A DNA stretch of 64,000 nucleotides from Octopus sinensis (Eukaryota). A program made the position numbers and the translations under genes. The notes under the pieces were generated by a model. The model saw only the letters and a list, made by a program, of their open reading frames with translations. It ran no database searches and was not told where the DNA came from. The stretch covers positions 18,232 through 82,231 of the forward strand of contig NW_021833113.1 in NCBI RefSeq assembly GCF_006345805.1, written 5' to 3'. This document shows positions 31,010 through 32,357 of this stretch, one piece after another. Each line of letters starts with the position of its first letter. Within the stretch, counting starts at the first letter, position 1.

Positions 31010-32357
31010 TTTACACTGCCACTCTGCATCATCACTCACCTTAGACTGCCACTCTCCATCATCACTCAATGAGTCACTCACCTTAGACTGCCACTCTCCA
31101 TCATCACTCAATGAGTCACTCACCTTAGACTGCCACTCTCCATCATCACTCAATGAGTCACTCACCTTAGACTGCCACTCTCCATCGTCACTCAATGATC
31201 ACTCACCTTAGACTGCCACCTCCATCATCACTCAATGAGTCACTCACCTTAGACTGCCACTCTCCATCATCACTCAATGAGTCACTCACCTTAGACTGCC
31301 ACTCTCCACCATCACTCAATGAGTCACTCACCTTAGACTGCCACTCTCCATCATCACTCAATGAGTCACTCGCCTTAGACTGCCACTCTCCATCATCACT
31401 CAATGAGTCACTCACCTTAGACTGCCACTCTCCATCATCACTCAATGAGTCACTCACCTTAGACTGCCACTCTCCATCGTCACTCACCTTAGACTGCCAC
31501 TCTCCATCGCCACTCTCCATCATCACTCAATGAGTCACTCACCTTAGACTGCCACTCTCCATCATCACTCAATGAGTCACTCACCTTAGACTGCCACTCT
31601 CCATCATCACTCAATGAGTCACTCACCTTAGACTGCCACTCTCCATCGTCACTCAATGAGTCACTGACCTTAGACTGCCACTCTCCATCATCACTCAATG
31701 AGTCACTCACCTTAGACTGCCACTCTCCATCATCACTCAATGAGTCACTCACCTTAGACTGCCACTCTCCATCATCACTCAATGAGTCACTCACCTTAGA
31801 CTGCCACTCTCCATCATCACTCAATGAGTCACTCACTCGCCTTAGACTGCCACTCTCCATCATCACTCAATGAGTCACTCACCTTAGACTGCCACTCTCC
31901 ATCATCACTCAATGAGTCACTCACCTTAGACTGCCACTCTCCATCGTCACTCACCTTAGACTGCCACTCTCCATCGCCACTCTCCATCATCACTCAATGA
32001 GTCACTCACCTTAGACTGCCACTCTCCATCATCACTCAATGAGTCACTCACCTTAGACTGCCACTCTCCATCGTCACTCAATGAGTCACTCACCTTAGAC
32101 TGCCACTCTCCATCATCACTCAATGAGACACTGACCTTAGACTGCCACTCTCCATCGTCACTCAATGAGTCACTCACCTTAGACTGCCACTCTCCATCGT
32201 CACTCAATGAGTCACTCACCTTAGACTGCCACTCTCCCTCATCACTCAATGAGTCACTCACCTTAGACTGCCACTCTCCCTCATCACTCAATGAGTCACT
32301 CACCTTAGACTGCCACTCTCCATCATCACTCAATGAGTCACTCACCTTAGATTGCCA
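31010..32357 (-). repeat. 42-bp minisatellite derived from the FECH exon 7 / intron junction (31 extra copies of the donor site)
   Basis: Unit on -: GTGAGTGACTCATTGAGTGATGATGGAGAGTGGCAGTCTAAG. It reproduces the last 12 exon nt (TGGCAaTCTAAG) and the GTGAGT donor. 32 junctions counted including the native one; 30-bp and +13-bp variant units present. Confidence 0.95.

Follow-up and report, generated by a model that had tools for sequence, protein, structure and literature searches.

We found that intron 7 of the FECH gene of Octopus sinensis begins with a minisatellite whose 42-bp unit is a copy of the exon 7/intron 7 junction itself, which places 32 further 5' splice sites downstream of the native one. 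From what we observe, namely the structure of this array, the way it changes from species to species and the use of the first donor in gene models, we infer a drifting, near-neutral, junction-spanning VNTR whose decoy donors would be mostly silent in splicing, a reading to which we assign a probability of about 0.7. The initial annotation of this DNA had proposed a splicing rheostat, with a ladder of isoforms that tunes heme synthesis; this proposal found no support, since all gene models join WQSK to VGP, the array drifts and its frame is broken.

The window (the whole stretch of 64,000 nucleotides that was analyzed) belongs to O. sinensis contig VCDQ01005982.1 (GCA_006345805.1) and carries FECH on its minus strand. 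A tblastn search of the window with human FECH as query returned nine exon matches on that strand, and exact mapping of the O. sinensis protein XP_029656120.1, by which exon 1 and a short ninth exon were located, gave ten coding exons. The FECH protein assembled from the window is 99% identical to XP_029656120.1, and the GCA_006345805.1 locus encoding the latter has the same sequence as the window throughout intron 7. Exon 7 (120 nt) reads ...CTGGTGTGGCAATCTAAG|GTGAGT at its 3' end (Table 1), and the residues that flank the junction, WQSKVGP, correspond to human Trp301-Pro307, a numbering that held when checked.

Other repeats accompany the gene. Within FECH introns lie very long tracts of (AT)n/(TA)n, which reach about 760 copies, at window positions 29386-30890, 33336-34137, 39468-39943 and 50235-50719, the first of them (~1.5 kb) in intron 7, ~110 nt past the minisatellite. 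Intron 2 contains an array of 15 copies of a 188-bp unit (46257-49056, 96% matches) that resembles a tRNA or SINE (GGTTCCGGGTTCAGTCCCACTGCGTGGCA), and a ~1.1-kb array of 21-bp units, (GTAGTAGTAGTAGTGGTGGTG)n, occupies 44928-46021; the latter is pyrimidine-rich on the gene strand (CAC/TAC), and ~220 nt separate its end from the acceptor of exon 3, which lies downstream. A dispersed repeat that encodes ...LIWQ(S/C)FYGWMPFL(T/M)P... occurs on the plus strand at 12395-12493, 16327-16380 and 57266-57316 and on the minus strand at 58172-58222, accompanied by 58-67-bp minisatellites (GGTGCTTTTTACGTGCCACCGGCACGG...) at 5562, 11371, 12508, 29172, 42119, 55296, 57331 and 57972. This dispersed repeat is the source of weak tblastn matches to the WQSK region of FECH, which we discarded as spurious.

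Table 1. Features of the FECH exon 7/intron 7 region of O. sinensis (window positions) and the exon 2 donor array of Argonauta hians (positions in loci L003 and L008). Vertical bars in motifs mark splice sites.
Feature	Position	Strand	Basis or note
FECH exon 7 (aa 244-279 of XP_029656120.1), end ...YRLVWQSK	32346..32465	-	tblastn + exact mapping
Native donor AAG|GTGAGT; 32346 is the final base of the exon	32340..32348	-	donor census, exact mapping
FECH exon 8, first residues VGPLTWL, after acceptor TTTCAG	26713..26877	-	tblastn + exact mapping
Intron 7, 5468 nt, with array and (AT)n tract	26878..32345	-	TRF, exact mapping
Junction-spanning minisatellite, consensus unit GTGAGTGACTCATTGAGTGATGATGGAGAGTGGCAGTCTAAG (42 bp), 32 units past native junction	30999..32360	-	TRF, unit list, pattern count
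AAG|GTGAGT decoy donors	n=27	-	donor census
AAG|GTCAGT decoy donors	n=2: 32136, 31669	-	donor census
AAG|GCGAGT decoy donors	n=2: 31841, 31374	-	donor census
AAA|GTGAGT decoy, terminal, degenerate	n=1: 31010	-	donor census
Eight in-frame decoy units, +14 codons each	32010..32345	-	donors after 32304, 32262, 32220, 32178, 32136 (GTCAGT), 32094, 32052, 32010
55-bp variant unit, frame-shifting 13-bp duplication GATGGAGAGTGGC	31955..32009	-	census, unit list
TAA, the first stop met in frame when exon 7 is read through	31956..31958	-	translation
Higher-order repeat copy A, 11 units, 467 bp	31754..32220	-	97.9% identity to copy B
Higher-order repeat copy B, 463 bp	31291..31753	-	unit list
A. hians exon 2 donor array, ~83-87-bp units	L003 2683-4380; L008 ~2129-3973		intron 2

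The register of the minisatellite begins 15 nt within exon 7, that is, its first monomer spans the exon-intron boundary, and each unit joins 15 nt of exon (G.GTGGCA.TCTAAG) to 27 nt of intron, as had been recognized at the outset. TRF describes it as 31.5 head-to-tail, intronic copies of a 42-bp unit with 93% matches (31032-32358). The 23-mer GAGTGGCAGTCTAAGGTGAGTGA occurs 33 times at up to three mismatches, against 0 expected from 100 shuffles, and the native FECH exon 7 junction itself differs from this unit 23-mer at two positions. The same 9-nt donor as at the native site is present in 27 of the 32 decoys, and all nine of its positions fit MAG|GURAGU. The initial annotation had counted 31 extra donors; its 27 perfect, two GTCAGT and two GCGAGT sites were all recovered, and one that it had passed over, the AAA|GTGAGT at 31010, brings the total to 32. 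Decoys are spaced 42 bp apart with the exceptions of 55, 30, 46, 55, 30, 41, 41 and 30 bp, and the array has a higher-order structure in which the GTCAGT, 55/30 and GCGAGT markers of copy A are repeated at +467 in copy B. Since the 55/30 unit pair is found in both higher-order copies, it is real and not a sequencing error. Variation among the units amounts to 1.4% at the nine donor positions and 1.0% at the other 33; the donor positions thus vary no less than the rest of the unit, and nothing points to the decoy donors being favoured or disfavoured by selection. When the native exon (window 32340-32360) is set beside the units, it reads CAA (Gln) at a codon that is CAG in all units, and GTG in place of the units' GAG. 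The native exons of Argonauta and Haliotis have CAG at the position where the O. sinensis exon has CAA, as the units do, and the units may therefore preserve an older state of the exon.

Each of the first eight decoy units would add 14 codons to exon 7 in frame, and the earlier claim of eight in-frame donors following directly on the native one (last 'exon' bases from 32304 to 32010) was borne out. That they would all add the same 14 residues was correct in length only: the peptides differ from unit to unit (e.g. ...DEGEW... and VSVSLSDD... besides the consensus 14-mer), and the donor at 32136 is a GTCAGT. The frame is then shifted by the 13-bp duplication in the 55-bp variant unit, which leads to a TAA at 31958-31956 and leaves all later donors behind a stop, again as first described. 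Overall, the frame of the O. sinensis array is disrupted by +13, +4 and -1 indels. A purine-rich stretch (GATGATGGAGAG) precedes every decoy; such a stretch resembles exonic enhancers and could favour the use of decoys. Folding exon 7 together with the first units revealed no RNA structure that masks the decoys (z = -1.38), and the centroid leaves the array unpaired. We also considered the decoys as recursive splice sites (an AG|GTRAGT ratchet) and rejected this: ...TCTAAG|GTGAGT is present, but the 20 nt upstream are purine-rich (GATGATGGAGAGTGGCAG) and have no pyrimidine tract.

The array has changed rapidly among Octopus species. An independent chromosome assembly of O. vulgaris (OX597841.1) shows 14 extra copies of this consensus unit at the corresponding junction, with decoy spacings of 42, 30 and 39 bp; all of these are multiples of three, and the entire array is an open frame with 14/14 decoys in frame. 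This in-frame state rests on two kinds of indel only (a 12-bp and a 3-bp deletion) and is thus no evidence of coding constraint, the chance of an array that is wholly in frame given two indel types being ~0.1. The older RefSeq model XP_014776607.1 of O. bimaculoides does not stop at the exon 7 donor but continues into one degenerate unit, and exons 4, 6 and 8 are missing from it. Its read-through is probably an annotation error to which the repeat and gaps in the assembly gave rise, and the model means either that two copies were the ancestral state or that a short-read assembly has collapsed. Copy number therefore differs between species, at 32 in O. sinensis, 14 in O. vulgaris and ~1 in the O. 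bimaculoides model. With this fast change in copy number, a broken frame in O. sinensis and no conservation of donor positions, the array behaves as drifting DNA. We note that both O. vulgaris FECH models (CAI9742898/9) skip exon 2 (...SLPAQ is missing) and that the locus contains a 100-N gap (L002 5201-5300); the skipping is probably a defect of annotation or assembly and not biology.

To judge which donor is used, we compared the annotated proteins. WQSK is joined directly to VGP in every FECH product available, comprising O. sinensis XP_029656120.1, two products from O. vulgaris, two from Argonauta and six models from four Haliotis species, although gene models lean on protein homology and the native donor would be chosen regardless. 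No longer isoform appeared among the best matches or cluster members for the full octopus FECH protein in a collection of 5.8 billion protein clusters. The repeat peptide gave a single chance-level match there, in a collection that seemingly holds no octopus FECH derived from transcripts and whose candidates were seemingly screened by length. One cephalopod sequence (P0004) is a spliced transcript and carries no intron information. A 526-aa 'Acipenser' match (P0002), taken up as a candidate insert isoform, turned out to be an unrelated sturgeon model with duplicated exons. In line with the gene models, the native, most upstream donor is likely to be the only one used, or almost the only one.

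Junction-spanning donor repeats are already known from human genes such as F7, and octopus FECH adds a further case. Intron 7 of human F7 carries a 37-bp VNTR whose first monomer spans the exon 7/IVS7 boundary and which presents 5-9 identical donors (Borensztajn et al. 2006, PLoS Genet, PMC1557585), the authentic one with 4-8 pseudo-sites of identical sequence behind it, which are capable of function yet stay silent. There, the functional site lying most upstream is selected ('oriented scanning'), exon skipping increases with the distance of that site from the exon, and only pseudo-sites engineered to perfect consensus attracted some splicing (PMC1557585). Among other human arrays, IFI6 (6-16) intron 2 contains 25 pseudo-sites and CBS IVS13 15-20 repeats, and either gene makes additional use of its two nearest pseudo-sites, whereas only the authentic donor is used in LMNB2 (100 bp x 10-15) and PDGFA intron 4 (81 bp x 16-18) (PMC1557585). 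The octopus array fits the structural criteria of F7 IVS7-type minisatellites with reiterated 5' pseudo-splice sites, being an intronic tandem repeat with a unit of 10-100 bp, a first monomer over the boundary, decoys that resemble the native site and a copy number that varies between species, and it is an extreme member of this class. The two loci further share identical pseudo-donors of which some are in frame, and in neither was a masking structure found. They differ in that F7 has 4-8 weak pseudo-sites (UGG|gugggu) with 4 exon nt per unit, whereas the octopus locus has 32 pseudo-sites that mostly match the full consensus AAG|GTGAGT, takes 15 nt per unit from the exon and contains a higher-order repeat. 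IFI6 and CBS, with a donor reiterated many times, come closest in copy number but differ in the use of their two nearest pseudo-sites, the octopus equivalent of which would be an addition of 14 or 28 residues. The LMNB2 and PDGFA arrays also span a junction; their units are longer than those of Octopus and nearer to the array of Argonauta (72 exon nt per copy). Internal tandem repeats at exon-intron boundaries have also been described in human segmental duplications, where they can remodel genes and lead to alternative transcripts (De Grassi & Ciccarelli 2009, PMC2812944); these are described as giving rise to new introns or lengthening exons, whereas the octopus array lies seemingly wholly inside an old, conserved intron.

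We propose that a 42-bp tandem duplication over the final 15 nt of exon 7 and the initial 27 nt of the intron occurred in the Octopus lineage and that the duplicated unit was then amplified through unequal exchange or slippage. The extra copies would have been tolerated because all of them lie downstream of the first donor and would be spliced out with the intron. The spliceosome would take the most upstream donor, the one contiguous with the intact exon, through 'oriented scanning' or exon definition, as in F7 IVS7. The decoys would then be silent or, at most, the first one or two would see low-level use, with 14 or 28 residues added, and copy number would drift with little or no effect on FECH output. 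Comparison with other molluscs fits this model: in all five reiterated FECH junctions that we found, that of Octopus included, annotation places the site where the intact exon adjoins it, as expected if arrays are tolerated because the exon-proximal site wins. Besides the full consensus of the decoys and the purine-rich stretch before each of them, two observations in human genes count against silent decoys, namely the splicing drawn by consensus-perfect engineered pseudo-sites in F7 and the use of proximal pseudo-sites in IFI6 and CBS (PMC1557585).

A further observation counts against a purely neutral model, as the same junction carries arrays in three mollusc genera, a coincidence for which luck has a probability of ~0.01-0.1. 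In Argonauta hians, intron 7 (3243 nt) consists throughout of a G+T-rich repeat with 128 GTGAGT hexamers and GTGAGT-rich 21-mers, and the final 25-72 nt of exon 7, together with AAG|GTGAGT, recur in it ten more times; a second contig of the same assembly has 11 exon-tail copies in a 3708-nt intron. Haliotis cracherodii carries 13.8 copies of a 51-bp unit (46 nt of exon plus GTAAG) at its exon 7 donor. In H. asinina we found a decayed remnant (49 bp x 2.7, L007 23030-23160) that starts within exon 7 and extends into intron 7, and whose two decoy donors are both dead through a G-to-A change at +1 (ATG|ATTGG and AAG|ATAGG). Lottia gigantea has no array at the WQSK|VGP junction, where its intron is 214 nt long, and junction reiteration was seen in 0 of 44 intron-bearing metagenome FECH loci (22 eukaryote sequence clusters). 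The H. rufescens locus lacks its exon 7-8 part and stands outside the comparison. As a control for how unusual this recurrence is, we screened 45 introns with 90 junctions in five species by exact-match chaining of protein-mapped exons and found five reiterated junctions, of which three are the WQSK|VGP donor. The fourth is the exon 2 donor of A. hians, GACCTGATGAGTCTGCCTGTACAGAA|GTAAGT (CAGAA|GTAAGT), with 14 perfect copies over 32 nt and 18 copies at up to three mismatches over 21 nt. The fifth is the exon 3 acceptor of H. cracherodii (L006 13010-13830, intron 2/exon 3), where the last unit of a 149-bp x 5.5 array (98% matches) spans the acceptor. Upstream of the real acceptor there are five decoy copies of the 3' splice site, to each of which the initial ~35 nt of exon 3 are attached; the arrangement mirrors that of the donor arrays. 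Junction-spanning arrays are thus frequent in these repeat-rich mollusc genes. Given that two other FECH junctions are also reiterated, the recurrence at WQSK|VGP is suggestive only.

This recurrence could mean that the array is kept by selection for reiterated donors, or that the junction is a mutational hot spot specific to molluscs; both we regard as unlikely. A selected array could serve as a landing pad for U1 snRNP that defines the 120-nt exon 7 or protects the 5.5-kb intron, or it could supply back-up donors. In favour of such a role or hot spot, the homologous donor bears arrays of different units in Octopus, Argonauta and H. cracherodii, with a remnant in H. asinina, and accounts for three of the five reiterated junctions among the 90 examined, while neither Lottia nor the other 22 eukaryote clusters have an array there. 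The baseline of reiteration in these genes is high, however, and the chance of hitting the same junction again, ~0.01 from the counts, rises to ~0.1 if the two octopod arrays represent one event. On the question of such shared ancestry, 18-445 of 2000 shuffles score as well as the Octopus 42-mer does against the Argonauta intronic repeats or against upstream exon 7 (18-92 of 2000 for the similarity between the units), which also speaks against selection or a hot spot. The same is true of the decoys left to decay in H. asinina, of Lottia, which copes with a 214-nt intron and no array, and of donor positions that show no excess conservation. A Chi-like or minisatellite-core-like motif in CTGGTGTGGCAG was rejected as the cause of recurrence: eight metagenome loci from two clusters share the exon-end GTGTGGCAG and have no array. 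It is likewise quite doubtful that the WQSK|VGP donor is a preferred site of junction-spanning arrays in molluscs; if it were, regulated unproductive splicing of a heme-synthesis gene, donor redundancy or a duplication hot spot could be the cause.

A splicing rheostat would require that the decoys compete with the native site, that the first eight yield a ladder of isoforms longer by 14n residues and the later ones NMD targets, and that copy number thereby tunes FECH. Its appeal lies in decoys identical to the native 9-mer and to the full consensus, in the eight in-frame decoys of O. sinensis and the wholly open array of O. vulgaris, and in the human precedents: two pseudo-sites are used in IFI6 and CBS, and consensus-perfect ones draw splicing in F7 constructs (PMC1557585). 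The premise that donors of equal strength can split splicing holds only in part: where natural arrays have been studied, it is the most upstream donor that prevails (PMC1557585). Insert-bearing proteins, annotated or predicted, were found in none of the species examined, nor did any mRNA or protein with the units turn up, although this is a weak test. The frame shows no sign of having been kept by selection, as it is lost after unit 8 in O. sinensis and, in O. vulgaris, is open through only two independent indel types. Moreover, copy number differs more than 2-fold between sister species that have the same enzyme, and an acidic insertion of 14-112 residues at Trp301-Pro307 of this conserved enzyme is unlikely to be tolerated. 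We therefore give the rheostat little credence. On this analysis, strict suppression of consensus decoys appears likelier, but it would not be new, given F7 IVS7 and similar loci. Finally, it is barely credible that the array or its length is a long-read assembly error: the two 41-bp units, with single-base deletions typical of noisy long reads, could be such errors, but the unit occurs at this junction in the O. vulgaris assembly as well, which is independent, the O. bimaculoides model retains a trace of it and the higher-order structure is internally coherent.

With 33 tandem donors, of which 27 decoys equal the native 9-mer, the octopus locus puts 5' splice-site choice to a natural test that is more extreme than those of F7, IFI6 or CBS, and it bears on whether the rule that the most upstream site wins, established in mammalian cells, extends to a cephalopod. 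If the near-neutral reading is true, the locus has no bearing on heme regulation. Gene annotation is affected, as in the RefSeq model of O. bimaculoides that continues past the donor into repeat sequence. Together with the FECH arrays of Argonauta and abalone, our findings suggest that mollusc genomes rich in repeats often contain junction-spanning VNTRs, and such arrays bear on the origin of alternative 5' splice sites and exon extensions.
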